Positions 5,601 through 61,692 of a stretch of 64,000 nt of DNA are shown in pieces. The stretch is from Marsupella aquatica. Lineage: Eukaryota > Plantae > Marchantiophyta. Under the pieces are notes generated by a model. The model made no database searches. It was not told where the DNA came from and saw only the letters and a program-made list of their open reading frames with translations. The DNA is taken from NCBI GenBank assembly GCA_973895155.1, contig OZ316899.1, positions 2,007,573 to 2,071,572 on the forward strand, written 5' to 3'. The first letter of the stretch is position 1. Every line of letters starts with the position of its first letter. The position numbers and the translations under genes are program-made.

Positions 5601-5864
5601 TTCAAAGAGTCACCTACTCACAACAAAACAGATCCATCTACTCATCATCTTCATCCATCTTAGCTTCAACCTCTCCCTCATAAGTCTGTCTCACTGTCAA
5701 GAGGATGTACTCCCTGGTCCCCTGGCCCCGATGTACAACGTCTACTGCCGGCTGTTCAAAGGCCCCATGTGCATCCAAACTGAACTCTATTTTAGTACCC
5801 TCCATCCTTCGAACTCTAGGTGAGCTATGGCAGACTACACGCCAACCACGAGACTCCTCCACAT

Positions 5865-38789: not shown

Positions 38790-40282
38790 TAAAGCCTCTA
38801 CTTGCGGACTTGACCTACGCTTGTCCTCTGCCAAGATCTCAATTGCCATGTGCGCCACTAACATTGAGGCATTGTGAGCTTTGTGTAACGCGCAAGGTCG
38901 GGTGGTGGAGGGTTTTTGATGTAGAGGATGACAAGCTCCATCTTGGGTATTGAATTGGAGCTGCAACCAGGGTGCCCTCCGTCAATCGTAGTAAAGTCCA
39001 GCTAGGTCAACCAAGCTTTGAAAATGGAGGTTGTGGGAGCTCCTTACTGTGCTGCAGGTGCTGTTCAATCAACGGAGTAGAGATTGTAGCTATGATCAGT
39101 GTCTGTAGAGCTGCCAGTTGGGTGATTCGATAGTAGAGAAGAGCAACCATAGTGATTCAGTCCTTCTCCTCGTTGCAACCAAGGACCAGGGAGCTGTGCA
39201 TCGCAACGTTGGACCTTGGTGTTGCATTGCTCCACCCACTAGCAGAGACTGGGACAATCACTACTTGTGTTTTGTGCATTATCATCTCTGCCCCGGTACT
39301 CGTTTTGTGCAATGTCCGTCTAGTGCTTGGCACTTGATCCCTACATTGTCGTCTGCCGCTTGGTTGCTTGCAGAAGGGATTGAAGAGATTGGAGGTGCTT
39401 GGTCTTGACATTCATTTTGGGTTTCAGAGTTTAGGAGGACAACTTGCACCATCGCTGACAAGAATGAGCTGCTTGTAGAACAAGAGGGACAAGCGCAAGC
39501 TGCTTGCATAATAGGAGACTAAGGGCAAGCATGAGCTGCTTGCAAAATAGGAGACTGAGGGCGAGCTGCTTCTTTAGGGTAAGAGGGTGAGCTGCTTGCG
39601 GAAGCTGAGAATGTGCATTTGAAAGGCAACAAAGTGCAAGCTGCTACCTGCATGATGAGACTTGGGACCTGCAATGTTCCACATGCTACCTGCGACGGGT
39701 ATGATAGCCATGACAGAAAACAGAAAACAGAAAACCTGTTACCAGGAAATTTTTTGCTGTTAACAGTCAAATATAACTGTTACCAGTAAGCGATTCCCTG
39801 TTACCAGTTTTGCATCAACCATAGCCCTTTGGTCCGAATGAAAAACTACGCTAATCACAGAATTTTTCTTTAGTGAATTAGGTTTAAAACAAACAATTAT
39901 TCTGTGCCATCCGATGGATGAAGAGTACTAGCAATCCTCCCTTGCAACAACATTTTGATCTGGAAGATAACTGAACACGGTATGGGGACTATACTCAATG
40001 AAACATTCATTCAAATATCACTATTCGTCCAAGCTAAAAAGTGAACCTTAGGGTGGGACCCACCACAGAACAAGTGAAGAGTAGTGTCCAAATGAACTCA
40101 ATCAAAATGAGTTCCCTTAAATGGACCGAGTACCGTGACAAACAAATGACAAAACACCTCCTAACGATTTATTTCAGAATAATTGAATAAATGCGGCTTG
40201 AAAGATAAAACATAATGATATCAACTTACACATTTTAAATAAAACACAGTGTAATGCTTACTACACGCGTACATAATAAAAG

Positions 40283-43200
40283 CAGCGCCCGACACTAACC
40301 AAAAAATTCTGAATAAACCAAGAAACATATCCGTTGGTAAAGACAAAATAGTGACTATCCGTTATATTGAACGACCTATATGGAAGTTTCGGCCCCTATT
40401 ATAAGCCATTCAAGTTCTGCCTCTCCAATACAAGCCTGACTTCGCCCACAGTCAAAATTGGTTGGCTACAAAGAGTCGACTCCTCAACCTCAAGTTTGAA
40501 AACATTTATGTACACCCAATATAGATGTTTACAAGGTATGTAGACTTGCCACGCGAATGTCGTAGGAAGAAGTCCTCACAAGAGCAAGCAGGGAAGATAC
40601 AGATTTGCACAAAGTACGTGCTTGGTGATCGAAGGTTCTCATGGGTTCGAATTTGAAATTGCTTTCCAAAAGCATTTCCAGTCCGAACATTCCATTCCCC
40701 ATCCAAACTCATCTCTTCTTGTCGTGCAGACTCCATTCGCTTAGTGTGACCCACAGTGAGATTAGACCGAGGTCTTGAGTTCCTCCCATTCCGACTACCC
40801 AGCCGGACATTTGGTTCCAAAAACCTTATTGTTTCTGGGAACACATTCACATTTATCCTGAGGTCAAACAAAGATGGCGCAGATCGACTCAATCCTGTTG
40901 TTCGGGCTAAGACAAGTCCTTGCTCTTCGAGGAACGTGATTTCAGAAGGAGATAGGTTCGTACCCTTCAGAGCAGGCAAAATTTCAGGAAGAGGAGGAAG
41001 CTGATGAACACCACGATGCGGACGACTCTTATAACAGGTTTGGTTTGGGCAGAACCAAATCATTTCGGAGATCGGTTCGCCCCTAAAGAGACGATGGCCC
41101 TTCACGACAATTCCAACAACACCATTAGATGAATGGAAGCCAACCTTCTTGATACGATTTCAACACTCATCGCGATCAAAACTCCCATTGAGTGTCCCAT
41201 TACACTGGGGACCTGCTCCATACTTGGACGTCCGTCGCAGCTGCCACTGCCCCAGAGGGACATCCTTCTCGAGCACAATCGTGCGTGGAAGTGGATTCTG
41301 AAGTGAGACTGGTGCACTGAGCAGAGGTTTTGTGGATCTTGTTGTACGGGTTGTTTGAGGGGTATTGTCCAGTGAATCAGTATCACCATCTGATGTGTCC
41401 ATACCAGAGAGATTCACCACTCTTGTCATAGGATCATTAGAATTAGAGGGAATGGAGGCAAAGTCAGTTCTGTTTAGGTTTTTCCTTTTCAAACCACAAG
41501 TATTTGGTGTGGTTATGAGAACGGTGTCATGCCGATGGGAGTCTTGTGGAGAGACAGTCCCAGTTGCATGTCCCTTTCTCTTCATTGACTTGGTCACGAT
41601 ATCTCCGTTAAGGGGAGTACTTCTTTCCAAATCAAAGTCCGCTGCGTTGGAAAGAAGCATGTTGGTCGCATCTTCAAATAACCTCGGCGAACCTGCTTGA
41701 TCGGCAGAACGGAACGCCAATTCCCATATAGTTGGTCCCTTTCCTCTGTTCAACCCTTTTCGATATGGACTGTATCCCGCAACTTGAGACAAGGCTCGGT
41801 TTTGGTCCACTTTGCATGCTTCAAAAAGACCAACTTTTTTCTTTGTAGCCCAGGCTTTCATAGACGCATGCCTTGATTCTGACCCTGTACAGTTTGGAAT
41901 CAAGGCACCTTCTTCTGCGCTTTTGCTCTGCCATAGTCCGAATGCAATAATCAGTACTAGCATTGTATTACCAGCGCCCGGCGCTGGCACCGACAAGTAT
42001 TTATAACATACGTGAAATACAATTTAGATTATGATTCTGGAACTTTATGGACATGTTGGACTCAAATACGAGAAAATCGCCTCCCCATTGGTGGGCGGCG
42101 CATCAAACTGGCTAAGGCTAGGGATCTCATAGCTTTAGAACGACGACAGTGGTTTGCTAGGAGTACTGGCAGAGTCACCTCTGTGGCTGCGTTGCTGGTC
42201 TAGGAGTGATAGCTATTGGAAGAGGTCGAATGGGATACCTCGCTTTACCGGCTCTAGGGCTCTAGAAGTTGACATGATGTATGGGTCACTCACATTTTGG
42301 GCCACTAGGTTTAGTCCCCCCTTTTTTTTATTGTGATTCTGGCCTTTGCTTTTGCCGCTGGCCTCCCTGAGGGGTTGTTCTGATTTATCTATGGGGCTGT
42401 TTGCTTCCCCCCGGCCGTGGGGTTTTCGCGGTCTCACCTTTTATTATAAAAAATATTTTCCCAGGAAATACGAGAAAATCATACCAACGCCTGGCGCTAA
42501 TATAAAGTTGATGGAAATGAAAGACAAGAGAGGAGATGGATGTCATACCACTCGAATAAAATTGCCCCACTGGCGCCATCGAACAACCCACCAGGATATC
42601 CAGCTTTGTAGCATCATGAGCTTTCCAGGGACACAGTTTCCTGATTGCCACCAAACCACAATCTCTTGGGACACGCGATACGCTACCACAAACGTTGGAG
42701 CGTTTCTTAGTTTCTCCCAAAGTCTCCGATGTTCTGATTGACATTCTTCGAGTACTCCTTCCTTGGAATGCCGATGGAAAGATTGATAAAAGTGAAATGC
42801 ATCAGAGCGCTCCCTCTCCAGGTCTGGGTGTCCACCAAAAAAAAACATTCCGCACAACATTCCATCCAGCTTGTGCATTGTCCGCCATAAACCCTTGGAT
42901 GACAACCTCTTGTAATCCATTCTCCTTGCAAACCTCAATCATAACTCTCCAAGCCTTTTCGAAAGACTCAGTGTCTTCACCTTTCAACTCGCATGTGAAA
43001 ATTGTACAAAGTGCACAGAAGTAATGGTCATAGACATGCGTGCTAAAAGTAAACCAATCGGTTGTGATACACTGCATCACATCAAAACTGACCCAGGCTC
43101 CTTTGAGTCTTCCACCAGGTTGCATCTGTCTCAAAAGATCCACACTGGAACCGTGACCCTTCGTGGTCATTTTAAAGATGTGAGGCCTGTTGTCTTGACA

Positions 43201-46200
43201 TCCCTGACCCGGGAGCAAATACCTCTGGAGAAACAACAGGTTAATCTTCTTCTGCATTTGCGAGAGAAAATCAAGTTCTTCCTAACGCTCCGACAAAGAG
43301 ATGCAAACTTTTGGGGAGTGGAAAGTACCATCAGAGACTTCCATATTTCAGTTTCTTTGATATCGACCATGTTGTCAACATGTTCGCAGAGAGCTTTCAC
43401 TATGGACCCTGTAGCAGAATTCAAGATCCCAGCTGGTTTTGCCAGAGGATTGGCTTCATGATTTTTTTTAATTAAATCCTCAGCCATCTTCTCCGCACTC
43501 CTACAGAAGGTTTTTCTACTAGATGGTTATGCTCACCTATATGAATCGCCAGGCGGGACATATGACTACATGTTTCCGCATCAAGTAATACTTGCGGGTA
43601 CATATAGAACAAACGGGCAGGGCAGTACTTGACACAAAAAGGAATCTGATCACAATAATGACACACAACACCGCCCTCTTCGATAAAAGATCCGACAGCA
43701 TACTGACCACTAAGCTTTGGAGTACCCTGCCATGCCTTAGCGTTTGCCTTCTTCTTCCTTTGAAAGTACTCGCAGGACTTGTTCCGACATTCAATGAATC
43801 CCGTACAGGTAACCTTACCGAATTGCCAAAGTTTTTTCGGCTGAACGTTCGCGGTAGTTGGAAATATGCGTGTCCAAATGTAGCAATCTTTGGCATGGTC
43901 CATGTCCCTAAGCCTAGAGCCTTTAGAGAGCATCTTGTCAATGGGTGGCAATTCAAACACGACGTTCCCGTTGTACTTAGTTGGCAGACAGGAGACTTGC
44001 TCATGTCTGAAATCACCCGTTGATATGAACCTCGATAACTCGCTATGACCAGTGGATTTGAGTAACGTATCCATTGCACTCCGCCGATACACGACCTCCA
44101 ACTGGTTAGAGCTTCCTGGAGTCTCACCTTTAACGACAGCATGTTGCGGGACTTTCATTTTCAACGTAGGACTTGAAGTGTGATCCCCATCTTCACTAGA
44201 AGAAATCTCGACAACATCAAATGGAACTTGGGGGACACCGGACGGTCCTTCATGTTGTCTTACTCGGAGTGAGTACAAAATCCCCGCGTATAGATGCCAA
44301 AACCGTTCACCATCATCCACATTGAATGTTGCTGCATCTTCGATGTCATCACTGGGTTCGAGCTCTCGAACAATGGCCTCAATATCATTCATCTTCAAAT
44401 CAAATCTCCCGCAACGGTATCTCTCCCGGACCTGCTTGTACGTGTCTTCCATAGGGACGGGGATGGTCACAATATCTCTAGTCCTGAATCGGGATAGAAC
44501 GATGGACCAAGACATTGCATCGAAAACAAATAACGAGGGCTGTAATGTTTCGAGGAAGAAAAGTCTATGGTAATATGGAGCTTATATCAGTCGAACATGG
44601 GAACTTCATGTTAACAGATGCGTTTGTATAAGACATAAAACATAGTCAACATAGGATCCGTTGGCGCCATAAATGATTTTTGTCATTTTTCCCCGATAAG
44701 TCCGGATGTCAGACGCATACATAATGCCAAAAAAGGCACCACAAAAATCTTTAACAGACTCTAAGATATTGTATAGTTGGAACAATTTGAGTAGCGCTTG
44801 GCGCTAACTAAAATGTCTCAAACATAATATGCCCCAAATCTCAATATTCCATACTAGCGCCTGGCGCTAGAATACAAAAACCCTCCAGATATCCATCAAT
44901 ACTATGAAATAATTGGATTGAAATGATCAATGAAAATGTGAATTCTTTTAAAACTATGGATGAAAAATACTCGTTATCACTAGCACCGGGCGCTAGTATA
45001 GAATGCAAGTAATGTTTCCCAAAAACCTTAAAACAATAGACATTTCTTTAAATGTGGGGTTGTTTTGATGAAATTTATGTATTCGAGGCACCATTTCAGA
45101 CCTATTCTATAGCTGTTGTTTTTACTAGCGCCGGGCGCTGCCATGACAATCATCCAAATTATCTACTTCAAGGGAAGTTGTTTATAATAGCGCCAGACGC
45201 TAGTATTCCGAGTGAGGGAGGAAAACGGTCATAATGGTAACATTTAACGGTAACTTCTGAGTTCCGTGTGTGTTATGCTTCTTCTACCGCTTGATTTAGC
45301 TAATTAAGTTCTCCGCATAGATACATTGGAATCCGCCAAACTTACGAACTTCTCGCTTTAATCGAAGAGTTCCGCTGAACTCCATCCTCCTTCTAGAATA
45401 TATTACACGTTGAGAGTTGATTAGAGTTCCATAATTTCATTGTACGATAGTTTGTACGCTTCTGGAAGGAAGACGATGGAGGGATTCTCCTCTTCATCCA
45501 GAGGGTACAGTGTTGTTCCTGACCAAGAGCGAGCTTATTCTGAATCCTCGCAGTCTTCGTTTACTGGTTCAGTTTATACACGTCATGTAACTCGTTCCAC
45601 AAAGTTGTTGCCTCCTACTTTTGTTAGCGCTGTTTTGGTTCCTAAATCTCTACGTAGAAAGATGGAGAACCTTGACATGATTGCGATCCAAGATGTTTCG
45701 GACTGCGCACTCGCGAAGACTGATCTCATCTCAAAACATGTCATGTGTTTTGGAAAGGATTCTCGTGGATTTGACAAGGAGCCGCCTCAAATGCCTCTAT
45801 GCCGATTGGTTCATATGAAGGTGGTTCGTACTTTGCGGAAAGATAGCTCTTCCATCGAGAAGCTGAAAGACTCGTTTTGCAGTATGGGTTACAATTCATC
45901 CATAGGAATGCGTTTCTATGTGCAGCCAACGGATGAGAATGGAATTGTTCTGACCTGTACCCAGGAAATTCGTGAGTCATGGGATCCAATTTGGCAATTG
46001 GAGAACGAGAAGTTTGAGGCTGAATGCGAGGCCGATCCAGGTTTTCTTGTGTTGAAGGATAAGATGTTCTCTGTCTTCGATGGAAATCACAGGTTGTACT
46101 CATGGACGCTTGTTACCAAGGAGAATCCTGACAATCCAAAATACCATCCTCGAGTGCTCTGCACAATATTTAAGGGAGACAAGGGATCTCTTATTGAAAT

Positions 46201-47815
46201 TGAGGCAGCTATGCACACCGTGAATCAGTAAGTTATCGTTCTTTTCCGGTACCTTCTTTGAATCTTGTGAGTGTTCTATTTAAGAGCGCTCGGCGCTGGT
46301 TATAGATAAATTGTACTTTGACTCTAACTCGCTGCATCTCTTTGTGTAGGCTTGGCCAAGCAGTTGTTGAGCCATCCTGGATTCTCGATGCAGATAGAAT
46401 CAAACGAATTCTGGCGCATGACCTTGAGTATTACAGTAAACTGATTGACCCGGCTAATTTCAAGAAGTTTGAGAGCATTCGGCTAAAGACTCGGAAGGGG
46501 TCATGGTATACGAAGAAGATGCCACAGGAAGCTCTTGTTTACATTCTATGTGAGAATAAGATAAAGTCCTATTCTCACCAATTCAAGCTTGACATGGAGG
46601 CAGCCGAGGCCCAAGGGAGTCCCTGGTCGGTGGACGAGATTTCCAAACGCCATGCGGCCATGATGAAGGACGCAACCAAAGACTGGGCAGTGAAGTCCTC
46701 AAAAATTACGCCCTTGTTAAGTCCTGAATTTGAAGATTTTCTTAGTACATGTGCAGAAATGTATGTTGTCATAGAGAGAAACAAGAGAGAGAAGAAGCCT
46801 GATGCCGTCGTATGTACAATGGACCGCGCCCAATTGTTCACTGCTGTTTCTGCCCTAGACCCAAAGTTGCGGAGCATCCTACTTGTGGCACATTGCAATC
46901 CTGAGCTGCGGAGACAGTTTTTCCACCCGGCAAGTGTTAACGATGACCCAGTCAAACAATGGTGTCATACTTGGATCACTTGGAATAGTGTAGAGGGAAT
47001 TGTTGTCGGCATGTTACATTCATGTCTGCGTGAAGTAGAGCAAACGATGCCTGCGACTAGATTGGAAGAGTGGAATTGTGGTTCGTTTGATGTTCTTGTT
47101 CAGTTTGTTACAAATGAATTCAAGAGATATGGTGATTCTGTGAAGAGTAAGTTCTTTCACACTATGTGGCCTTCAAAGTGTCCAGACAAAGAAGACTATA
47201 CCCAGAAAAACCAGAAGCGGCTAAAAGGTATCTTTATAGGTTCTACATGCACATGGAGGTAACCAAATCTGATTACTTCTGGGCATATCCTGCAGCTTTC
47301 ATGAAGTGGATTACAATAAGTGAGATGACACCATAGCTGATTTGTACTCCATGTACCCAGCGGAGGGCATATTTCCTCCAAGACCTACGACAGAATGGGA
47401 GAGAACTCACTGCCCCTGGTATCTAGATACAGATAGATGGGATTCTCCTTTTGATCAAAGGGAGAAAGATGCATTCCATAAGCTTTCAAAGTCCCACATA
47501 CCAGCAAAAATTGTGTCCGACATGAAGCAGGGCCTGCTAGACGATGTAGACAAGTCTGCCACTGACTTGCAAAGTATCTGTGAAACGACTATTGTTCATG
47601 TGGACCGAAGTCGCAAACCTCGAGCGAAAGCAAAAGCGGAGTTAGCAGCACCAAGCGAGTCAACGAAATCTGGGAGGAAAAGTGAGTATAGTGTTCCCTA
47701 GTTTGGCCAGTGCTTGGCGCTGGCTTGAACTGTCATGCGAATTCACATTTCTTTCTACATTCCTAAGCCTTTGTTGTAACCTAAGTGATTTGCATTTGGT
47801 TAGCGCCTGGCGCTA
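40283..47815. promoter_or_regulatory. Dispersed palindrome family A, TAGCGCC-N-GGCGCTA (11 copies in cassette A)
   Basis: Copies start at 40283, 41971, 42485, 44792, 44854, 44979, 45126, 45188, 46284, 47706, 47801; 44854-44870 and 47801-47815 are perfect. Regulatory role is inferred. Confidence 0.8.
40400..44515 (-). pseudogene. Mutator-like transposase A: Ubl/PB1-like, WRKY/GCM-like Zn domain, DDE core, Cys-rich domain, SWIM
   Basis: KVTCTGFIECRNKSC..CHYC..CPAR..HIGEHNH; WVSFD (D1); GFMADN (D2); DAFH; NCTGSESRHAS (E); FPACSCEDF (SWIM). Split by frameshifts and an intron; left end approximate. Confidence 0.8.
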
Positions 47816-49243
47816 GCTTGTTTGAATACTCAGGATTTACTTGTTCTAACTAGGACCTATTGGTAATTTAGGAGGGAGGAAGTCTAATACTGCGGAAACA
47901 GGAGATACTAAAGTGGATGCTACACCTGAAGTTTTTGAGGCAAACACCAGAGCTCGATCGGACCCCATTACTCCTGTCGACAAGGGGAAGGTAATAGTTC
48001 CGGTTGACGCCACAAGTACTAGGAAGAAACGAAAGAGAGCTATCGAAGGTGGACCTTCTTCAAGGGAGAGTGTTGCAGCATCTGGTGTCCAACGTGAAGT
48101 TGGAAACTTCAAAACTAGAGTGTCTCGTCATGCCATGGTTGAGACAAGCATATCCGAATTTTTTGACTCCACTTTCAACAAGGGGGAAAAACCTGAATGG
48201 GTTAGTAATGTGGAGAAGTGGGGGAAGGATCTCGTTAAGTCGGGATATAAAGAGAAGGGTGTTGTGCGGGGAGGAAAAGAAAGATCGTATGGAGTGGATG
48301 CGGGTTTCATTTACCTACCAACCGGGTTCAAACCAACGATCATAGATAAGAAGGTTCCTAAATGGAACACTCCAGATCACTCCATGGCTAGATCTTTTTT
48401 CAAGTCCATGGATCCATTTCTATCAGATGATGGATTCCTTGCAATTCTACACAATGGGGAGTATGATCCCATGTCTCAAGTCATTGTTGCCTATCAGGAA
48501 TCGAGAAAATTTCAGTGCATATGCACACATAATGTTGTAATGTCTGTCCCGATGTACGCGGCAAAGACAGACCGTCAGGTAATCTTGTACTCTTAACTAT
48601 GTCGCATTTTGAAATATAACTCATTTAACCTGGAGTTGCCAACTGACACTTGGGATTGCTTTTCGCAGATGTTTACCCTCAGGCTGGACATATTGGTCGA
48701 ATTAATGGGAAATGCAAAATTTCCAAAGACCCTAAATTCCGTCCACTCTCCATCAGTGAGGACCCCTCGGTCACCAATTTGATCGGACTCCCTTCTCTCA
48801 AATCCGATCCATTCCCGCAAATGGAGTTTTCTGGAAATGCTCGCCTATCTATTGGGTTTATGCAATCTGTCATTGAGCTTGTCACCCGACCTCGTGATAT
48901 TTTTATGGATTGGACCGCTGGGGCTGGAAGCTCCTTCATTGCTGGAGACTTCTCGGGGAGGTTTGTGCTCAAGATAGAACATAGAAAAGAATTTATTGAA
49001 ACCACTTTGAAGGTTTTCATGGATTTGTTGTCTCCCAAAGAGATTGCGGTTTTACCTCCACCTATTCCTATTGCCGACAGAAAGAAGCGAGATAAGCTTC
49101 GGTCGGTACTCAATTTTGATTCTGATGATGAGTCCAGTGAAGGTGGAGATGGAGAGGAACAAGGTGCAGGGGACTCGGAGGAGGAAAAGGAAGAACCTCG
49201 TCGATCTCCTGATGAAACCGATAGTGATGACTCTTCCGAGTAA
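45476..49243 (+). pseudogene. ParB-like / N4-N6 DNA methyltransferase-like fusion gene, copy A (4 exons, frameshifted)
   Basis: MPLCRLVHMKVVRTL..LKDSF..GY..FDGNHRL (ParB/Srx-like; DGNHR at 46079); C-terminal VDAGFIYLPTG..W..LSDDGFLAILH and RLSIGFMQSVIELVTRPRDIFMDWTAGAGSSFIAGDFSGRFVLKIE; GT-AG introns 46228-46349, from 47682 (acceptor uncertain) and 48579-48668. Confidence 0.8.
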
Positions 49244-49575
49244 TGTTCATAAACTCGTAAGCTTCTTTCTCCATTCCCGTCAATTTATAACATTTCTGTG
49301 TTGTTTTGGAGAAAGGCACATAACTTCCTAGATTTTGTTTGATCAGGTCAGAGTGGAATGCGAGGAGATGTTTAAAATTGCAAAGGAGGGTTGCTAGACA
49401 CAACATAGAAACACCAGAAAAACCTTTTGTTCTTCCCTCCTATGCAAAGAAAGCCGCAAGGAAAGCCGAGAGTACAAGGACGCTTTGCTGAGAAAACAAA
49501 GGTCTTCGGTTACGAAGGGGTGTTGACAGGAAGTTCATTAAACATCCTTGTGTTGATGACTTCTCCCGCAACCAG

Positions 49576-49603
49576 TTTAGGGTCTAGGGTTTAGGGTTTA
49601 GGG
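49576..49603 (+). repeat. Short telomere-like repeat (TTTAGGG)4 inside the giant element
   Basis: TTTAGGG TCTAGGG TTTAGGG TTTAGGG. Confidence 0.8.
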
Positions 49604-51642
49604 TCATTTAGGTCCGTTAGTTTTCCAAAGAAACCCACATCGGCTGTATTCGGATGACATTTTTGGATCTCTAGGATGACATTCGGATCTCTTGTTGACA
49701 GCTTTTTTGCACGACATTTTTGGATCTCTTGTTGATGGCATCTCTCTCGGACGACATTTTAGGATCTCTTTTTGACGACAATTTTCAAGGACGACACTTG
49801 TCACGGACGATAAGTTTTCGGACAGGCGACTATTTTGGGACCGACACCCGTTTGCGGCCCCTTTGCGGGAGATACATTTCGGGTGTTTCGCGAGAGACAT
49901 TTCTCCTAAACAAGATCTTTGGGACCACGACCATTTTTGGACCTTTGAGGACCTTTTGTGTACAATTTTCACATTTTTTCAGAGGGGAAGTTGCCACTAG
50001 ATCGGATTTATTAAACATGGAGAGAAACGGTGAGCTCATGGATTGGGAGGCAGCGTTCCTCCCTTCTCGTGTGCGTCCGGAAGAGAGCCATTTCAGTTCT
50101 TTTGAGTCACGGATGGATACTGAAGAGACTGAAACCTCTACTTTCCGGAACCGTCACGCTCTACCGTATGATGAGGCTATTAGTCCTGGAGAAAAGAACA
50201 TCCCGTGGATCGTCGATTCTCCACCGCTCCCATTCGTGAGCAGGTTCTTGTCTCATCAGGCTGTTCCGGGTAATTGCAACGTGCGAGCAAACAGTAGAAT
50301 TTTTGCTCGCACGGGCAAGATTTCACCTTGTGTTGGGGCCCCAAAAAGGTCTGGAATATTCCTTGCTAGCATGGAGACCCTGTTCGATCAGTAAATATTG
50401 ACGGCTACCCATGGAGGATTCTAGTCCCATGAACGCACTAGATCCATTTTCGACCAATCAAAATGACATTTCTTCAGGCCAGCAAAATTGCTAGTCTAGT
50501 GACGCCATCACATTGAGCCACTCAAACGAGGTACGGTCTCCATGTACAGGCTTCCACATGTGAAAATTCCCAGCCGAGGAAGAGTGATAATGAAAAAGTA
50601 CTGCACAATTCCCACGTGAAAAGAATCAACGTGTCATTACTGTTGAGGAAAAGAGGATTAAGGCCGTTTGGACACTAATTAAGTCACTTGCAAGTGAACG
50701 AGACACTTACCGTTCGAACCAGAGGCGAATCCAAGGCGGCAAACCGTCCACTTAAACAAATCCTCTCACCCAAAAACCACCAGTCTTCCGAATCATTCTT
50801 CCGATCACTTCCACCGCGTCTGACTCGAGCTCTTTCATTCGGAACTGCTATCAGTGTTCCAAGTACTTGAGATCCAGATCAGGTTAGCGCGGGTCTATGG
50901 TTCTGAGCTATTTTCAGAGAATCACTCTCCGACAAGGCATGACATTCATCATATTTCATCATGAATAGTGTTTCCATTTGTTGAATGTCGTTCTTCTTAA
51001 TCACTGTTTGGGTTTCGTAAGTGCAGAGAAATGTCAGGGGTTCCAAGCAATCCTCCTCAGGGGAAATGGCGACTTGAGATCCGTCGTTACAACCCGACGA
51101 CGGATGGCCCACTAGAAGATGACTCTCCTCCGACGCAGAAACCCGATGCAGAGACTGTGAAGGTCTCCGTAGACAGCAGTGTCCAACTGAACTCGGTCAA
51201 TCTGTTGGATCGTCATCATCATTGAGGAGAACACCGACTCCTCCAAAGTTAATTCCAGCAGCGAAGTCTCCACCGAAGCCAAAGGTGGATACCACACAGC
51301 GCAAGGTTGTATCGAAGAGGAAGAGGCTCGCAGAAGAGGAGCAGTATTGGATTGAGAGGGAGATCTATGACTACTGGACCGAGGAACGCCTCGCCTCCTC
51401 GGATTACAATTCTGAGTCAGACACTGACTCCGATGCATGGAAGGCGGCCAGCCCCTGAGGGGAGAGTCAGATTGTGGGTTTACTGAAATTTTCGTAGTTA
51501 CAAGCGAATCACATGTCCTCATGTACTTTCAATATGTATGAGAAGTAAAGTTTGGGTGTTCCTTTCCTTTCTATGTATTGCTCTGGAATGTCATTTGGTA
51601 CATAGTACGTTTATTTGGGAGTCACAGTTGGACCCTTCCCAG

Positions 51643-54600
51643 ACTAGCAATATCGCTAGTATAGAATTGCCTCTACATTTCAGATCAATCTTTGATGTGT
51701 TCATCTTAGATAATCTTAGAGTATTACTGCAACAACTTCAGGGAACACTTCCCGCCCAAGAACACATCCTAAGTTGATCAGACTAGCGATCTTGCTAGCA
51801 AAAAATTGGCGTCATTTTAATGATCAAACCGTGAACTCTATACATACTTGTAGATAGGTTAACACGGCTGGAAGTCGGATGTTTCTGTCAGGATGTAGCA
51901 GACTTCCTAAGACTAGAGAGATTGCTAGCCATAAACAACAAACTCAAACACCATAAAAGTTACCATTATGGACCTCGCTAACATTATGATTCACTCGGTG
52001 AAAACAGATTGATATTTGTGAAACCACAAACTCGAGTAATCCATCCCACCACCCTATAATTAACATCTCCAATAAACGAGTAGTCCCCTATCTGTAACGG
52101 AATTAAACTCCTCACTTCCCCAACAGTCAGAATCGGCTGTTTCACAAGGTCATCCTTCTCCAGGTTGAGTGAAAACTTGTTTAAATACACCCACAGCAGA
52201 TGTTTACAAGACATGTATGGTTTCCCTCGTGTATGCCTCTTATAAAAGTCTTCACAAGAACACGAAGGGAAACAACAGATTTGCACCCAATATGTGTGCG
52301 GAACTTGTGAATCAGTCTTGTGAGTGGCGATCAAGTATCTCCAACCCCATCCATTTCCGGTAGTTACCTTCTCATTTCCGACAACTCTCATGTATTCTTG
52401 TGTAGCGGAAACGATGCGCTTGAGCAACTCTGGAGTATTGCTGAAACGTTATCGTGCACCCTTACCATTTCGGGTTTTCAACCGACGTTCCACATTAGTT
52501 AGATCAATTCGTTTGGGGAATGAGTTAACATCAATTCGTAAGTTGACCCGATTGGGGGACGGGAACTCTCCAACTTGATTTGCATCCACATAGGAGAGTC
52601 CACTGATCTGGAATCCTAATCCCAACAGAAACTCTATCTCGGGATGGGAGAGGCAAGTCCCACGCTGAACCTTGAGCGACTCGGGTGGGGGGGGGGTAAT
52701 TGAGCTAGAGTTCTGCGTCCTCGGCTCTTGTGACACTTATTGTTAGGACAGAAGTACAACAACTGGCGATGTGGAGACAATAATCGCAACCCGTGAATGG
52801 CGACTCCAACAATTCCCCCTTGCGCGGACTTACATCTAGTCTCCTTGATGAGATTTCTACATTCATCTCTTCCAAAAACGCTTCGGTCAACCGACCCGTT
52901 GCAAACAGGTCCAGCACCTCTACCGCTCCGCCTGAGATGCCAGGTCCCATAAGGAACATCAACCTCTCGGATGGAAGGGATCCTTTGGGGGGCATCCCGA
53001 TGGTCATCCCCGACATCACACGAAGGTTGAGTCCCCATTTTCTCGGTATCATTGATATTACGACTTGCATCATCACCATCGTCATCTGAAATATGGATAA
53101 CTCCAGCAGAACAACCTCCGACAGGGGTTGCCAAAGTTGTATTATTTGCTATTTCTGGGTCCGCAGAAGTCTCCGAAACATTGACGAAGCAAAATTCAGA
53201 ATAGAGATTACGCCTTTTTAGTCCTGAAGGAGAAGTTGTTGTGCGTGACACCTTGTCACGTCTGTGGGAGTCATTCGCGTGGATTACAGCTGAAGCTTTC
53301 CCTTTCCTCTTCGTGGATGTTGTTCGGAGATCGCCATGTAATGGAACTGTTCTATAGAATTCATACTTAGCTGAAGACTCAAGCAAAAGATTTGTTGCCT
53401 TTTTGTAAGCATCCATGGATCCCATAGCATCGGCGTTCCTATATGCTAATTCAAAAATGGTCGGCCCCTGGCCTCTGTGAACACCTTCACTGTAGGCAGT
53501 AAAAGCAGCAATTTGCCCCGCAGCACGATTCTGGTCCACCTCACATGCTTCAATCAATCCCACTAGTTTCTTCATTTGGCAGGATCGCATGGATGCATGG
53601 ACTGATTCCGCTCCAATACAATTTGGCATCAAGGCTGACTCCATTGCAGTTTGCGTCTGTGAAAAAGCAGTCCCCAGTCAGACCTGATATGCTAGCAAAA
53701 ACAATGACGTCAAAGAGAAATGAAATTGGACACTTACAACGCGGATGAAGTTCCCCCACTGCCTCCACCTCACGACCCACCAAGATAACCATCCTTGGAG
53801 AGACTTCAATTTCCCAACATAGCAGTTTCCTTCCTTCCACCAACGATGGATTTCGTCAGCAACACGGTAGGCCTGAACATATGTTGGTGCTGTTCTCAGC
53901 CTTTCCCACAGTTTATAGTGCTCTCGATGGCGATCTTCCCGAATACCCTCCAATGTGTGACGACGAAGAGATTGAGCAAAGTGAAAGGCGTCACTGTGCT
54001 CCTTCTGTGGGTGACGGACACCTCCAAAAAAACATTTCAAATGGCGATCCATCCAGCCTCGACATTATCGGCAATAAATCCTCCAATGAGTGGGTCATGC
54101 ACGTCATGATCAGAGGCAACTAATCATATATCTCCATGCTGTTTCAAGAGATAAGGAGTCCTCCGCACGGAGCTCACAAGTGAAGATGGTACAAAGGGAC
54201 CTGTAATTATGGTCGTACACATGGGCGCTGAAAGTCAGCCACCCAGTGCTTATTCTCCGCATTACATCAGAACTGACCCATGCTCCTTCCAGCTCACCTC
54301 CACTCTTCATCTGCCTGAGAATATTGACACCAGAACCTGGGCCATTTGTACTCATTTTGAAGACATGAGCCCTATCGGTCTTGCTCCCCTGGCCAGGGAA
54401 AAGGTACCTCTGAACGTAAGGAAAATTATTCCGTGCTTGCATCTCACGAAGAGAATCCAACTCACCTTGTTTTGGGTTATCCGTTTTCACGCTCTGGAAT
54501 ATGGCCTGGAATTTCTCAACAGTGGACACAACCTTCATCGATTCCCATATCTCTCTCTCTTCTTCTTTTGATAGTTCTGAAGAAGACTCTGGATGCAAAA

Positions 54601-57600
54601 GAGAAACCAGGTTTCCTATAGACTTGTTAAGAACACGCCCTGGCGTACACACGGGATTCGCTTTATGAACACCAAAAACTATCTCCTCCGCCTGCTTTTT
54701 TGCCAATCAAGATTTCCCTTTCCAAACAACGTGGTCATGGAAACCCATGTGAACAGCCAATCGAGACATGTTTCGCAACATTTGACTCAAGAGACAGCTT
54801 AGGATAGACGTACAAAAGTTTAGCCGGACATTCACGGATGCAGAGAGGCCTCTCCTCACAGAATCCGCACACCAACCCTCCTTCCTCCACAAGCTCACCA
54901 AGATGAAACGGCTCTGTAAATTGTCCTTTCCTCGGAAGGAAGAGTCATTTTTTGAAGCGGTGTGCTTCAACTTTCTACAGACCAGATTTTGACATTCAAG
55001 TACACCGGCACATCTGACTTTTGACACAGACCAGTGATTGCAAGGTTTGAGATTAGCTGAAGTTGTGAGAAGTATCGTCCATGGGTAGCCATCATTATCC
55101 CTATCCATGTCCTGAAGACCATATCCTCGACGAAATTGACCTTCGACCGGAGGAAGCTCAAAAATGCAATTTCCGTTGTATGAAGTGGGCAAAGTCTGCA
55201 CTTGAATCTCCTTCCAATCGTTTCCCCTGTGGAAATATGCCCAACTCGCTTGACCCAGTAATATTGAGGAAGGCATCATATGCACTAACTCGATAAAGAA
55301 CTGGATGAGATTGAAACTCGTTTTGAATCATTGCTTCAAAAACGGATTTCTCAAAAGACTTTGTCGACACAGAAGAGAGATCCCAACCCACACTCTCAGG
55401 GGAGATGTCGATAATTTCTGGTACTGCAGGTGACGGGCGAGTCGGGGATTCTGGATCGGAAACATTGATATGTGCAATGTCATCCTTACATGAGACTAGC
55501 TCTATAGCTAAACCACACTTCAGGTCCCAAGCTCTCTCTGGCAATATTCCTGAACCATTATCCGACACCTCATGACTTCTGGATCCATTCCGAGAGTAAA
55601 GAACGAACAACTTCCAGATGAAATCATCTTTCAAAAGCCCAAACCTCGATGAGAGAAAAGACTCCTTGACAGAGATAATAGTATTCTCCGGAACATCTAG
55701 AACAACAACATCACCCGTCGTCTTTCTCTCGATCACAACCTTCGATCCCAATGAAGACATGCTGACAGTTTTGGACATTACAGTCTACAACAATCCTCAA
55801 ATGTGAGATACTTTACTCCCTTCTTTCTCCAAATACATATGAGGAAACGTGCTTGTGTAGGTGTTGGACTCAACGTATTTATTTAATAAATGCCTCTTAT
55901 TCCCGTTATCTGACCATTATTTTGTCTTATATGACACTATTTATGGAATGATAAAGCTAGCAAGATTGCTAGCTCAATGAACCAAGTAAAATGGTTCAAA
56001 ACCTTACAAAACACCCTTCACGAGTTCATGGATTTAGTGATCGATTTTTGGCTAGCGATGTCGCTAGCAAAAACAGTTTCTCATAAGAGGCCATTATGAC
56101 CAATTATATCCATTGGAATTGGTCAACGGGTACCTATATGTCAACGGTACGGTACAGTACCGGACACCTGTCTCTTTGTCATTAGATACTTTTCTTTCAG
56201 TTGTGAGTTTGGTGGTTCGTATTTCCGGAAGTACATGTATACCTGACGGTGTCTGAAAAATGATTGTGAGGAGAGTCGTATAGAATATCTGTATCTCTTT
56301 TCACGACCGAGCGCTGCATTCAGGTGAAAGCAACAGACGAGGGTACGATTCTGTCTTTGACTGGAAGATCAATTCTCGGGTTTCTTTATGTTCGCAAAGC
56401 GTGTCGCCCTCGACCTTGACCTGTTCATACCCTTATCACTTCACGGACCCGCTGATGGAGCCATTGTCTTCACCCGAGAGCTTGTCATCAGTAGGATCGT
56501 TCAAGTCAGTCGAGTCAAGCCAAAGGGAGACAAGGTCTACAGTGAACAAGAAGGCGCTCCAGGCGGGATTGAAAACACCGAGGAGGCCCAAGATGGTGAA
56601 CCAAGTAGATGTTGTGAATCCTACGTTTCAACCTGGAGCTTCATAACCCTATTCTGTTTCATCAATCGCCATCTTTTCCCTTTTGGAAATGACGAATTTG
56701 GATTCCCCCTCGCTCCTCCGAGGATTCCCCTTTGCAGAATGCAAAACATGCAGATCGTTTGGACCTTGCAAACAAACTTGACTGCGATTGAGACACTCAA
56801 GAATGAATTCCGGACGCAGGGATACATCAAGGATGCGCCTCAATTTTACGTACAAATGACCGGCGAAGATGGCCTTGTCTAGATGTGCGACGATGTGATT
56901 CGAGAGTCGTGGAATGACATGTGGATTCTTCAGAATGAAGAATTCAAGAGGGAATGTGATTCTCACAAAGCTTTCAAAATTTTGAAAGACAAAATGTTCT
57001 ATGTTTTCGATGGAAATCATCGTCTGTACTCATGGATGCAGCTTGCGGACGAGAATCCCCATGATGTCAAATATCATCCTCGAGTTGTTTGCCGAATTTT
57101 CAAGGGTGACAAGAACTCATTCGTTCAGATTGAGTCGGCGATGCATGCGCTGAATAGGTTTGTTTCTTTTCCTTCAAGCTGTGAATTGTATATAAAATTC
57201 TTTCAGTTCCTCTTGTTAGCGATCTCGCTGACCTGTTTCTTTTGTTCAGGTTGACTCAATGTCACGTTGAGAATTCTTGGGTCCTTGAAGCAGAGAGAGT
57301 CCAGAAGGTGCTCAGTAATGACCTTTCTATATACAAAGATATCATCGATGCAGACAACTACAAACTTTTCCAGCAGAAGATGGCAAATATCAGGAAACCG
57401 GCTTGGTATTCGAAGAACATGACACTCGATGCCTGCACGTACATTCTGTCTGCTGCTAATATTGCAGCGCAGATGGAAGATTTGAAGAAGAAGTTCCAGT
57501 TGAAAGAAGCGCAAGGAGAACCTCTTTCAAAAGCTACGCAAGACATGGCAGTGAAAGATATGATGAAGGAGCAACTAGCAGATTGGAATGTGAAGGTGCC

Positions 57601-59427
57601 AAAGATTGGACCTCTCCTGAATCCTGAGTTTGGTGACTTTTCCAGAAGTGTGTTGAGATGCACAACTACTGCAAACATGAGAGGAAGGAGGCCCAACGAA
57701 CAGACAATAAAGGAAGGGGTAATGTGTCATGTGGTCTTGATCGTGCGAGGCTATTTACGGGTGTCTCATCGTTGACTCCGCAGCTCAGATGTGTACTCCT
57801 CGAGGCACAATGCAGACCTGAGCTTCGCAAGAAGTACTTCCACCCTGGTCAATTCTCGGACAGCGAAACAAAACTTTGGCTTCACCGATGGGCTGTATGG
57901 GAGCAGGTTGAGTCAATTTGTTCTTCGCTCATGTTTGAGATTATTTCAGAGATGATCCCAACTGTTCCAGATGCAAGGATCCTTACTTCATCTGAGAAGA
58001 CAAAGCCATCGCTGATCCTTGACATAGAGGAGGACTTTGAAGATTTCCAAACGAGAGTGAAATCTCGTTTTTTCAGACAGATTTGGCCACCAAAGTCGGG
58101 TGAGAAGATTGACATCTCACTTTTTTGGAGGAGGGCGAAGAGATATACATATCGTTTTTTTGTAGATAGAGAAGTTGCTGACAAAACATATTGGTGGTCC
58201 TATCCTGCTTGCTTCTCGCCTTGGATAGCAGGAGTGAAAGAGGATCCAACCTCCGTTAAATATGGAGAGTACTCGATGTACCCATGTGAGGGAGTGGAGG
58301 CTCCAAGGAAGATGAGTGAGTGGGAAGTCCTTCACTGTCCATGGTTTTTAGAATCAGACAAATGGGCAGTGACATTTGACACAGCAGAGAAGGCAACATT
58401 TCATATGATAAATCGAGGCTTGATACCAGAGTCGTACATTACAGAGTCCAAATTAGCTCCTGCAGAAGCCGAGGCTGGCGGATGTGAGGCAATGGAGAAA
58501 GTTGTTCTTGGTGTAGCTGCCATTGTCGACCGGAGTAGATCAAGGAGACCTTGGAAGGTGCCGGTGAAGGACACGTCCAAAGATGGATCAGTCTTGTCTG
58601 GGAAGCAAAGTAAGTCTTTTTCTCCTCTTTTTTTCATACCTCATTTGGAGTAATTTTGTCTCAGTCACCTGTCTAACATTAACATGTTTTTCAGAGAAGA
58701 GAAAGGCTGCAGCCTCTGGGAGTTTGAAGAGTGGGGCGGATGATGGAGAAGAACCCAAGTCTTCTGATGTTGAGGTCACAACAAAATCTGTTGTGGACCT
58801 AGGTTCAATCAAGCGTTTAAAGAGGAAGCGCAATGTCCAAATTCTCTCCGACTCGGATGAGGAGGAAGCATGCGTCGCGCAAGGAGTAGCACAAATGTGT
58901 GGTCTTAAGAAGGACGGTGAGAGGCATTTCTTGGCAAAGAGCAATCTCACGGAAACTGCAAACTCAATTAGCCAGAGGAAAGTAAGACCTCCCTGGATGG
59001 GCAATGCGGATCAGTGGTTGTCTGGAATGAGCAAATCGAGCGAACACCCAAACACCGTGATGATCAACGGAAAACATTATGCTGGAATTGGTGCTCACTT
59101 GGGTTTCATATTCCTTCCCACGGGTCATCAAACAAGCATCACAGACCGGGAGGTCCCGAAGTGGAATGTTTGGAGTGAGAAATTACCATATTATTTCTTT
59201 GGAGTCATGCGTTCGATGCTTGCCGATGATGGTTTTGTCGCAGTTCTTCACAGCTCTGACTATAACCATATGAGGCAAATTTTTTCTACCGTCGAGCAGA
59301 AGAACAAATTTAAACATGTCCGACAGTATTCGGTTTTGCTTTCATCTCCTTTGCATCAGGCAGATATGGACATCGAGGTAAGATATCCGCAATAGTTTTT
59401 GTGCAAGTTTTGCTAGCGAGCTCGCTA
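51643..59427. promoter_or_regulatory. Dispersed palindrome family B, (C)TAGCRA-NN-TYGCTA(G) (7 copies in cassette B)
   Basis: Copies start at 51643, 51783, 51913, 55955, 56051, 57215, 59414; 55955-55974, 56051-56068 and 59414-59427 have perfect arms. Regulatory role is inferred. Confidence 0.8.
51984..55778 (-). pseudogene. Mutator-like transposase B (paralogue of A)
   Basis: Ubl-like N-terminus; KVRCAGVLECQNLVC, SRLAVHMGFHDH; WVSSD (D1); GFIADN (D2); DAFH; NCIGAESVHAS (E); SWIM CSCEDF..CKHLLWVY. Confidence 0.82.
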
Positions 59428-59977
59428 ATCAAAAGTGCACATTTCTTACATATTCTCATTTTCAATTCAGGTGGTTACTCTCATTATGGATGCCTTCTGC
59501 AAGGTGGAATTCTTGGCAAAAGTCCCAAAACATACAGGATATGTTCCAATGACTTCCTCGGAGGATGCCCGCCATAAATTGATGTTGAGTGTTTGCTACC
59601 CAAAAATTGATCCCAGTCCCAAGGCGGCTTTTGCAGGTTCCAATAGATTGTCAGTTGGGTTCATGCAAGCTATAATGGAGATCCTTACTTTGCCAAAGGA
59701 CATTGTCATTGACTGGACTGTTGGAGATGGAAGTGCTTTTGCCGCTGGGGAATACGCTAGGAGATTTGTTATGGGTGTTGAAGATCGAGACATTCTTCAT
59801 CTGTGTGCGCAAAAAACTTTGGCAAGTGTGTTGGATAGACATGCCCAGAAGTTGAAAGGGGCCGCAGACCCAAAAAACGATGATCCCAATGATGAAGGGT
59901 CGGATTATGAGTTCACCATCCCAGGAGATGATCAGGGAGGACCTTCAGACGAGAAGGATGAATTCGACCTAGAGTAA
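56401..59977 (+). pseudogene. ParB-like / N4-N6 DNA methyltransferase-like fusion gene, copy B (4 exons, disrupted)
   Basis: IPLCRMQNMQIV..LKNEF..GY..FDGNHRL (57009); LGFIFLPTG..W..LADDGFVAVLH; RLSVGFMQAIMEILTLPKDIVIDWTVGDGSAFAAGEYARRFVMGVE; introns 57158-57249, 58610-58694, 59378-59470 at the same positions as copy A; true start may be slightly upstream. Confidence 0.8.
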
Positions 59978-61692
59978 AGCACTTGGCCTTTGATGTAGAA
60001 CTCCCTATTTGGCGTTTTTATTTTGTTTGTAGAATTTTTGGATATGTAGTATTGATCCGATTCTGGTGATTTCTTCAGTGATAGGCGTTTGGATTGGTTT
60101 TTGGAGGAGAGATTCCGTCTTCGGAAAGAAATCAAGGATCATTTTCTTGTGACCCCTGAGAAGGGATTTGCGCTTCCATGCTATGCTGAAAAAACTGCAA
60201 AGGAGGTTGATGAAGCGCCCGTCGTTTTGACTTGGGAGGGGAAAGGTCTGCGGTCAGTGAGGGGTGTTTGGAAAGCCCTTTACTGCCCTCAGTTCATAGA
60301 TGATGAGGCTGGGACTGTAGCACAATATGTTGACGATTCGGCTGAGAAGACTGATAGGGAGTCGAGTAGCGATCCTAGTAATTCCTCAGATGATTTGGAA
60401 TCAGAGGATTCTCAATGACTCATGGTCAATTTCAGATGCAATCTCATTCCAAAAGATATTTGTCATACCAAAGTTTTATTAAAGATGGATTGTGAAAGGT
60501 TTTTTGACCTGGTTTTGTTCATAATGATGATGCCTTTTCATTCAGTTCAGTGTAGTGAAGATCTCAATGTTTGCATTTGTGAATATTTAAGTATCTGCAT
60601 TTTTGTTTTCCGTAACTGTTTCACAATATATATCGACAATCTTACTACCCTGAAGTTACGCACAAACTTGCCTCGCTAGCCTGCTGTCCTCGCTAGCAAA
60701 ACTCCTGTTTGCTCGCTTAATAGAATACCTCGACTGTTCCTATTGATGGTGTACTGCCAATCGATAGGAGAGTTCAAGAAATGTTTGGGCGAGTTGACTT
60801 TAAGGACAGTAACATTCCCAATGAAACTTATACGAGGGCAGTGCGTCGGGGTCCTTCTGAGAGATACATTCAATTGCGTGGTCTTGGATTCAAGAAAAAT
60901 TGGAGGAGAGAAGCGGCAAGAGTGGAGGATGATTGCAATTCTGAAAGCTAGATGCAATCACTTATTTGTTGTTCCTCCCATTTTTCACGAAGAACGGCAT
61001 CACATTGTTCAGTTTGGTGATCACTTTAAGCTAGAGCCGAGCGCTGCTTAAGCTCTTTTGATGTTTCGGGATGGAGTCGCCCTTGGCTTCGTTGTTAGGG
61101 TTTTTCCCGGATGTTGTCTTCAGGAATTCCATAGTTTTTCCTGCAGTTGTTGGCTAGCGCCCAGCGTTGCTTTTGTTTTACTGGAAATCCTCAGCCGGGG
61201 TCGACCGTGGCTTCTGTATATCAGATTTCTAGGCCTGCAGGTTTTAACTTATATGTGCATTTTTTGGACCTGCGCCGAACGCGTTATGTACTTTGCGATT
61301 ATATATGGCAGTTTTATTTTTTCCCTGCGCATTTTGACATATATTGGTCTCGGATTTTGTTTATCTCAATTGTGAGACGGTTTTATTTGTTGTAAATACA
61401 TGATTCCGTCTAGTCCAATTTCCTTTCACGCGAATTTAATCGTCTTGATTTCTATACCAGTAGTTTGAAATGCATCTTTCGTCCACTTTTTTCATGATCA
61501 CTGTTCACCGCTACCCAAACACTGTTCATTGGTAACAGTTTCTTTTTGCTGATAACAGTAATTGTTTGCTGTTATTGTTATCTGTTTGCTGTCGTTTGTA
61601 AATTCCCCCTGCGACCTCCACCTCAAAGGTATGACCTGGATACTTTGTATGCTTTCTTCAGCCAAAGATGTCCCCAATGTGCTTTACACCAC

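Follow-up and report, generated by a model that had tools for sequence, protein, structure and literature searches.

MURA binds the terminal repeats of Mu. Both the AtMu1 transposase and the TnpA protein of Spm are reported to self-activate (bioRxiv 10.64898/2026.08.24.746577). The VANDAL transposons of Arabidopsis, which are MULEs, encode VANC proteins and carry family-specific motifs in their own non-coding DNA (PMC5735166). Some mobile elements encode clamps of the ParB family that work from palindromic sites in regulation or anti-silencing, as found for KorB (PMC11790492) and VirB (bioRxiv 10.1101/2023.06.01.543266), and also BisD (PMC12409273). In algae, Sola1-1 of Ectocarpus has an accessory gene for a ParB plus DNA methyltransferase protein (PMC12477816), and PAG3 of the Bostrychia Plavaka element is a ParB-like gene with adjacent inverted-repeat arrays (bioRxiv 10.1101/2025.02.11.637652). 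The authors of the algal studies already propose that the accessory protein binds and modifies its own transposon (PMC12477816; bioRxiv 10.1101/2025.02.11.637652). Here we describe a stretch of 64,000 nucleotides from the liverwort Marsupella aquatica (assembly GCA_973895155.1, contig OZ316899.1, positions 2,007,573 to 2,071,572 of the forward strand), hereafter the window. At the protein level, its regions 38-51 kb and 51-61.5 kb are two diverged copies of one two-gene unit, with 30-64% amino-acid identity. We call these copies elements A and B. Each has a transposase-like gene and, divergent from it, a gene for a ParB-like and methyltransferase-like protein, and each has a short palindrome of its own.

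When the two elements are compared with their relatives, each lineage keeps many copies of one palindrome of 14-34 bp at fixed non-coding positions, and the sequence and spacer of the palindrome vary in step with the element proteins. We consider, with a probability of about 60%, that the palindromes are cognate cis-recognition sites of DNA transposons of ~10-16 kb that carry the divergent transposase and ParB-like/methyltransferase-like genes.

Motif A is TAGCGCCNGGCGCTA (TAGCGCC-N-GGCGCTA) and motif B is TAGCGANNTCGCTA (TAGCGA-NN-TCGCTA). As the sequence-only reading of this DNA had noticed, both motifs have the half-sites TAGCG/CGCTA, with a gap of 5 nt in A vs 4 nt in B. A pattern search of the whole window at up to two mismatches gave 9 matches to motif A vs 0.05 expected, and 9 matches to motif B vs 0.89 expected. 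Each motif has two perfect copies, at 44855 and 47801 for A and at 56053 and 59414 for B. Cassette A (40200-50500) holds 6, 8 and 10 copies of motif A at up to one, two and three mismatches, respectively; the means of 300 dinucleotide shuffles of the cassette, the background used for both cassettes, were 0, 0.007 and 0.07. Cassette B (50500-61300) holds 5 and 8 copies of motif B at up to one and two mismatches, with shuffle means of 0.003 and 0.16. The totals counted earlier, 11 for A and 7 for B, were recovered once copies with three mismatches were allowed. At up to two mismatches, motif A has no match in cassette B and motif B has none in cassette A, so the claim that the two do not mix stands. 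In the remaining 38 kb of the window, motif A has no match and motif B has one, also at up to two mismatches, and none of the listed matches in the related loci L005 and L010 lies beyond their terminal inverted repeats. Thus, the motifs are not equally common outside the elements.

The sites avoid conserved coding sequence. All ten A sites lie in the 30% of A that is not A/B-conserved coding sequence (P 6e-6), and all eight B sites lie in the corresponding 24% of B (P 1e-5), which bears out the earlier remark that homologous coding exons are free of the motifs. The positions that had been named in that remark's company were also found again, namely the divergent intergenic regions, the equivalent first intron of both ParB-like genes and the DNA past the 3' ends of the transposase-like genes. 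In A, five palindromes starting at 44792, 44855, 44981, 45126 and 45188 (44792-45202) occupy the divergent intergenic region. The flanks of these five are unrelated and the sites are alike only in the palindrome. One site with three mismatches (40283-40297) is located 3' of the transposase-like gene, and two with two mismatches each (41972-41986 and 42485-42499) are in a 612-bp non-conserved gap, an intron, of that gene. A decayed site (46284-46298) lies in intron 1 of the ParB-like gene, where L001, the closest relative of A, has TAGCGTCGGGCGCTA. A perfect site (47801-47815) lies further on, where a non-conserved gap separates the middle exons from the methyltransferase-like exon. In B, the divergent intergenic region holds two sites, 55958 and the perfect 56053 (55958-56066), and four more at 51645, 51784, 51914 and 51967 (51645-51980) follow the 3' end of the transposase-like gene. 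Another is in intron 1 of the ParB-like gene (57217-57230), and a perfect one is in the intron between the two methyltransferase-like exons (59414-59427). A decayed B-type site with three mismatches (50480-50493) is found just within the left end of element B. The introns in the window were called from conservation among A, B and the relatives together with the reading frames. No tandem repeats were found around the sites in the window.

The span of 40283-59427 that had been given for the system is real; it is too narrow, because A-type sites were also found outside it. One, with one mismatch, is at 38640-38654, ~190 bp in from the left end of element A and thus subterminal. Two decayed ones, with three mismatches each, start at 61032 and 61155 (61032-61169) in the right subterminal region of A, past element B, which appears to be inserted there. 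The palindrome at 38640 is bracketed by an inverted repeat of 23 nt at 38465-38789, whose arms are 91% complementary and lie 279 nt apart.

Every half-site carries CpG, and the decayed sites have lost CpG. The suggestion that many mismatches reflect decay of methylated CpG held well for B, in which 7 of 10 mismatches are CpG to TpG or CpA, and weakly for A, in which 3 of 21 are at CpG; 19 of the 21 mismatches in A sites are transitions. The CpG loss in decayed sites fits methylated, silenced copies. At position 44985, the mismatch of the site at 44981, all other family A copies, those of public runs, read G, which restores a perfect TAGCG half-site. Liverworts have host N4-cytosine methyltransferases (MpDN4MT1) that act on CG sites in sperm (bioRxiv 10.1101/2021.02.12.428880).

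A search with the ParB exon found 384 proteins in a representative library and 52 in a large protein collection; among the 52 is a protein of Calypogeia fissa, a leafy liverwort. Ten homologous loci from other assemblies (L001-L010) were compared with the window. L005, from C. fissa, has 18 copies of (ATTGY)TAGCGAGCTCGCTA(RCAAT), 8 of them with a perfect core, and perfect palindromes of up to 34 bp. L004 has 6 copies of TAGCGAA-N-TTCGCTA. CCAGCG-N3-CGCTGG is the type of L002, L003 and L009 (2, 1 and 2 copies), and YTAACGG-NN-CCGTTAR is that of L006 and L007, with 10 copies in L006. L001, 80% identical to A, has one copy of the A type, in intron 1, and the outgroup L010 has 32 copies of CGGCGGA-N-TCCGCCG. 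When six patterns are tabulated against eleven loci, the table comes out essentially diagonal. In a maximum-likelihood tree of the ParB exon, A groups with L001; L002, L003 and L009 group together with support of 91/89; B, L005, L004 and L006 do so with 87/90; and P0067, the protein of L010, and P0068 fall outside. The clade of window B, L005, L004 and L006 carries TAGCGA-like or TAACG types. Thus, the palindrome type co-varies with the protein clade, as had been proposed when each protein was suggested to have co-evolved with its palindrome. The types of the liverwort group are variants of one plan, ATTG-NN-A(G/A)CG, 3-5 nt, CG(C/T)T-NN-CAAT. Such an apparent half-site plan, kept while the spacer changes, is how the sites of dimeric binders evolve.

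The same site map is found in A, B, L005, L006 and L010, as far as the length of the contigs allows. Its shared positions are the DNA past the 3' end of the transposase gene, the intron of that gene, the divergent promoter, the introns that flank the methyltransferase-like exons, and the DNA past the 3' end. The divergent promoter of A holds 5 sites and that of B holds 2; L005 has 8 there, ~105 bp apart, and L010 has 10, ~95 bp apart. A site in ParB intron 1 is common to A, B, L001, L004 and L005. Sites also correspond one to one: 41972 and 42485 of A match 2956 and 5824 of L005 in position in the transposase intron, 47801 of A corresponds to 12547 of L005 and 4306 of L006, and 59414 of B corresponds to 13356 of L005. 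Between copies the palindrome alone is conserved and the flanks are not.

Several other features were seen in the relatives. The transposase intron of L005 contains a LINE-type (long interspersed nuclear element) insertion with an 882-aa reverse-transcriptase frame (3134-5782, minus strand; RVT_1, E 4e-33), which lies between the palindromes 2956 and 5824 and has no similarity to the window. In the CCAGCG-type lineage, a second palindrome type, TTACCGT ... ACGGTAA, occurs at 1525-1543 of L002 and 4273-4296 of L009, and the promoters of L002 and L003 have many AACGG/CCGTTA words; these may represent either a further cis-code or MYB-type sites of the host. As a second, transposase-specific code, GTTACC/GGTAAC was considered and rejected, there being no overall enrichment. 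A small RING-finger frame (zf-C3HC4_3) lies near the ParB-like gene in L006 (925-1329) and L009 (6661-7152), both of which are metagenome contigs without a visible transposase-like gene.

The ParB-like and methyltransferase-like gene of A (45476-49470, plus strand) consists of a ParB exon (45725-46228), middle exons (46342-47623) and methyltransferase-like exons (48021-48581 and 48716-49192). The gene of B (56388-60211, plus strand) has an in-frame stop at 56880-56882 in the ParB exon and a frame change in the middle region, and it is therefore a pseudogene. The first conserved exon is strongly kept across the relatives, with FDGNHRL and YHPRV invariant. Because Pfam scans of large frames, exon pieces and long relatives gave only PF01555, at an E of 0.2 for a single sequence, the domain labels rest on fold and on profile searches against the PDB. 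An atlas feature search of the accessory protein gave only DUF3723 and a weak ParB_N lead. The fold was tested on an AlphaFold (AF2) model of the full-length relative P0067:130-760, made from a 40-row alignment. Its pLDDT (predicted local distance difference test) is 77 overall and >90 over most of residues 10-440. The VIA Z of the model was 8.5 for KorB (8qa9), 8.3 for Caulobacter ParB (7bm8; root-mean-square deviation (rmsd) 2.5 A over 99 residues), 7.8 for Noc and 6.9 for PadC, compared with 5.4 for sulfiredoxin and <=4.5 for unrelated chains. The top matches all belong to the ParB family, and a ParB N-domain fold of the accessory protein is supported by this predicted structure.

For the last exon, profile comparison gave E values of 3.5e-6 with DpnA (5hek), 0.012 with CcrM and 0.035 with M.MboIIA. 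The match covers motif I for binding of S-adenosylmethionine (SAM), D-x-x-x-G-x-G-S/T, which here reads DWTAGAGSS. The earlier label, which joined ParB to methyltransferase, is thus appropriate in both halves: ParB by fold, and methyltransferase-like, of the beta class of N6A/N4C DNA methyltransferases, by the profile match to DpnA and CcrM. At the position of DPPY, the liverwort group has LP(T/N/K)G and P0067 has DMPSG, and a profile of the LP(T/N/K)G block had no match in the PDB. Since DPPY is absent, the methyltransferase-like domain is probably inactive. The idea that the palindromes are, as a general rule, target sites of the methyltransferase was rejected; a CcrM-like GANTC centre is present in L010 only. 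A ParA-type ATPase partner had no Pfam match in any scanned reading frame, and each element has only two conserved genes.

The transposase-like gene of A (40417-44515, minus strand) encodes an N-terminal Cys/His finger region, a core and a SWIM-like C-terminus. It is probably broken by a frame change near 43497-43510. The core is conserved with B, L002, L004, L005 and L010, and the divergent pair of transposase and ParB-like genes is present in the same five and in A. The transposase-like gene of B (52092-55778, minus strand) contains two abutting frames, 54110-54706 and 54707-55285, which suggest an in-frame stop near 54707. Its C-terminus has C-S-C, 16 residues and C-K-H, a SWIM-type CxC...CxH recognized by eye and having no Pfam match. 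A MULE-type DDE or other Pfam domain was not matched in the transposase reading frames. Atlas features gave weak leads, with scores of 0.68-0.75, to GCM, FLYWCH, FAR1, MULE and ZSWIM clusters, so the term MULE-like is used here as a lead and not as a demonstrated membership.

The ends of the elements are visible only faintly in the window: a repeat finder gave no inverted repeats of >=40 nt there, only weak AACAG-type word matches. What made these weak terminal matches interpretable was L005, whose terminal inverted repeats are clear (628-700 and 16132-16201; 92% match over 51 nt, extendable to 73 nt) and enclose all of its palindromes; the repeats of L010 are ~55 nt. The left terminal-repeat-like end of A (38447-38520, plus strand) reads GGGGGAT ... 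GCAAACAG and is similar to the terminal inverted repeat of L005, and the right end (61514-61609, minus strand) has the inverted GGGGGAA ... GCAAACAG. For B, the left end (50275-50317, plus strand) reads GCGAGCAAACAG ... TTTTTGCT. The right end is at 60685-60722 on the minus strand, with the B half-sites TCGCTAGC twice at 60668-60700. The two ends of B form the second terminal pair of the window, GCGAGCAAACAG ... TTTTGCT. The GCAAACAG-type terminal motif is common to A, B and L005, though the palindrome of A is unlike that of B and L005. From these ends we infer that element B (~50.27-60.72 kb) is nested in the 3' subterminal part of element A (~38.45-61.61 kb). Target-site duplications, which in MULEs are 9-11 bp long, were identified for none of A, B and L005, and the element ends in the window are decayed, so we propose the nesting only as a reading of these ends. 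It would explain the A-type sites at 38640, 61032 and 61155 and would sharpen the observation that the motifs do not mix.

Both copies in the window are decayed. In four public runs from two organisms, family A (44500-50400) was represented by hundreds to ~1,700 short contigs per run, with 90-99% identity and very high summed depth, which indicates a high-copy repeat in those runs. The contigs behave like DNA of such a repeat, and no canonical splice joints were found in them. A 92-bp segment (48575-48666) in the intron between the methyltransferase-like exons was absent from a high-depth contig in all four runs, with AG in place; it was rejected as a splice and is a copy-to-copy difference. 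In the other 38 kb of the window, tblastn found no further ParB-like gene. The 3' region of A contains, just ahead of the left end of B, telomere-like repeats of the plant type (TTTAGGG variants) and tandem repeats of 20-40 bp, at 49575-49605 and 49652-49819. Foreign-looking sequence with CTGTTACCAG-type words at 38800-39810 is possibly another small insertion.

In the reading that we favour, a dimer of an element-encoded protein would read both half-sites. Its most likely identity is the ParB-like protein, which may act through the helical domain that follows the ParB N-domain. The arrays of sites would let it load on, and perhaps spread over, its own element only, by analogy with KorB at OB operator sites, VirB at virS and ParB at parS. 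The outcome may be control of the transcription or chromatin of the element, for example by opposing silencing that is based on CpG methylation. The function of the palindromes could be anti-silencing, autoregulation or marking. For the degenerate methyltransferase-like domain, which has no DPPY, binding of SAM or DNA or recruitment of factors would be more probable than methylation. Private codes would keep co-resident lineages such as A and B independent. We favour the ParB-like protein because its predicted fold is that of proteins loading at palindromes (KorB, VirB and BisD), because the terminal-repeat motif is constant between lineages with differing palindromes, and because ParB-like genes are found together with inverted repeats in algal transposons that belong to other superfamilies. 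The constant terminal motif suggests, if the termini are read by the transposase, that another protein reads the palindromes.

Several points weigh against this proposal. Pfam ParB_N (PF02195) had no match in the window exons or in ten long relatives. FDGNHRL occupies the place where canonical ParB has GERRxR, and DGNHR is in appearance closer to the GxHR of sulfiredoxin and ParB-like nucleases; with DGNHR instead of GERRxR, behaviour as a CTP (cytidine triphosphate) clamp is no more than putative. Whole chains of ParB, KorB and Noc align to residues 22-393 of the model (187-209 residues aligned) only loosely, at an rmsd of 5.5-6.9 A or more. L008 yielded no palindrome family. Taxa are few in the ParB-exon tree, and several of its forks are unresolved. 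The code does not change at every split, since window B and L005 have a common core though their proteins are only ~41% identical. The transposase and ParB-like genes are co-inherited in every locus showing both, and co-variation therefore cannot tell which of the two proteins reads the sites. The terminal repeats of B hold B half-sites and the repeat of L005 holds AGCGAGC, and either also fits binding by the transposase.

The transposase is thus a serious rival as the reader. It might bind the palindromes through its N-terminal Cys/His finger, for transposition at the subterminal sites or for transcriptional self-activation, while the ParB-like protein acts elsewhere. The finger region is conserved, sites are present in both subterminal regions as well as, in the form of half-sites, in the terminal repeats of B, and a MULE transposase, AtMu1, has been reported as a sequence-specific activator of cognate copies (bioRxiv 10.64898/2026.08.24.746577). 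The co-variation fits the transposase equally well. However, the sites of A and L005 are densest in the central promoter and occur in introns too, not at the termini alone; the subterminal arrays of L010 have as many sites as its promoter. The terminal motif GCAAACAG is kept between lineages that have different palindromes, and the algal literature ties inverted repeats to ParB-like genes in unrelated transposon superfamilies. On balance, we regard binding by the transposase as the purpose of the palindromes as unlikely.

It is much less probable that the palindromes act by DNA structure, as cruciforms or hairpins, in recombination, gene conversion, small-RNA production or replication stalling, with gene conversion keeping the copies alike. 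The perfect palindromes of up to 34 bp in L005 and the homogeneity of the copies within an element would agree with such a role. The same is true of contigs of the other runs that jump from palindrome to palindrome (44869 to 47795, 44874 to 45119), which may reflect recombination or an assembly artefact. Most arms, however, are 6-7 bp with a centre of 1-2 nt, too weak for hairpins, and what a lineage conserves is the sequence, beyond mere symmetry. Across lineages the half-site plan ATTG-NN-AGCG is kept while the spacer changes, as in the sites of dimers, and sites are also located in the promoter, which is presumably untranscribed. A role as hairpins or in RNA was ranked low for the short arms, the centres of 0-5 nt and the promoter sites. 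Least probable of all, in our judgement, are ordinary sites for host transcription factors in a bidirectional promoter and in enhancers. The clustering in divergent promoters and the other plausible host motifs (AACGG-type) in the promoters of L002 and L003 speak for such sites. Against them, A and B use different, never-mixing motifs in one genome, the motifs change between lineages while the positions stay, many sites are in introns and 3' flanks, and the motifs are essentially missing from the other 38 kb of the window, as counted above. Host E2F- or MSA-type sites in particular were rejected, since the motifs differ between elements of one genome.

The favoured reading, recognition of the palindromes by an element-encoded protein, can be extended to a eukaryotic, transposon-borne counterpart of ParB/parS and KorB/OB. 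In this tentative extension, which we think is rather doubtful as a whole, a nucleotide-gated clamp would load at private palindromes, spread over the transposon and protect it from silencing by CpG methylation or set its chromatin. The code would diversify like plasmid incompatibility groups, so that lineages could coexist without cross-talk, and the system would extend over red algae, brown algae and liverworts and move between transposon superfamilies. If the binding is true, this would be a second kind of transposon self-recognition, evolved independently of VANC with a bacterial ParB-type module, in land plants. At least five palindrome types with intact or near-intact partner genes in public assemblies offer a testable set of orthogonal protein-site pairs. 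These pairs bear on the escape from and tuning of transposon silencing, on ParB-type loading and spreading on chromatin, and on the co-evolution of specificity and site, and they could be programmable tethering tools. The CpG in every half-site, together with the host N4-cytosine methyltransferase on CG in liverworts (bioRxiv 10.1101/2021.02.12.428880), suggests a link to methylation.

Comparison with the known systems places the liverwort elements among them as follows. With MURA, AtMu1 and TnpA they have in common short repeated motifs inside the element, some near the ends, that are read (in the liverwort elements, putatively) by an element-encoded protein, which can drive activation of cognate copies. 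In the liverwort elements, however, the densest cluster is central, the sites are symmetrical, and the terminal motif is kept while the palindromes diverge.

The likeness to VANC and VANDAL is closer in organization. In both, an accessory protein is encoded beside the transposase in a DNA transposon, and a short motif peculiar to the family is found mostly in non-coding DNA of the element, upstream and in introns, is rare elsewhere, and differs between related families. Arrays may be tandem in both, as in the ~95-bp units of L010 and the ~105-bp spacing of L005, whereas the sites in the window lie in unrelated flanks and not in tandem repeats. VANC motifs are 9-nt words in one orientation, while the liverwort motifs are palindromes that read both ways. 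The liverwort protein has a predicted ParB fold and a methyltransferase-like tail, with no sign of a relation to VANC, as judged from the lack of a Pfam match and the ParB fold. Loss of methylation on cognate copies, driven by expression, belongs to VANC.

KorB-OB of plasmid RK2, VirB and BisD share with these elements a ParB-family protein on a mobile element that has several dispersed palindromic sites, many of them near promoters. In those systems the ParB-family protein serves gene regulation or anti-silencing, beyond partition. KorB is the best structural match of the predicted P0067 model (Z 8.5), and the OB core TTTAGCGGCTAAA resembles the half-sites TAGCG/CGCTA, which is maybe a coincidence. 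The liverwort system differs in its eukaryotic host, in its spliced genes (as predicted), in the fused methyltransferase-like domain, in having DGNHR and not GERRxR, and in that no ParA or KorA partner was seen.

The algal ParB-like genes are likewise similar: a ParB-like N-terminus is joined to a DNA-modifying domain, the gene is on the strand opposite to the transposase in a large DNA transposon, and inverted repeats adjoin the gene. The ParB and methyltransferase accessory genes, the idea of self-binding and the inverted repeats beside ParB-like genes are thus already published from algae. The liverwort elements differ in that they are in a land plant, are MULE-like and have lost the catalytic motif of the methyltransferase. 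Their sites are spread, at positions that are conserved, throughout the element and not only in an adjacent array, and neither lineage-specific co-variation nor conserved site positions were reported in the algal studies (PMC12477816; bioRxiv 10.1101/2025.02.11.637652). New in this study are therefore the MULE-like setting in a land plant, the dispersed and positionally conserved site map, and the direct evidence that the palindromes co-vary with the lineages that carry them.

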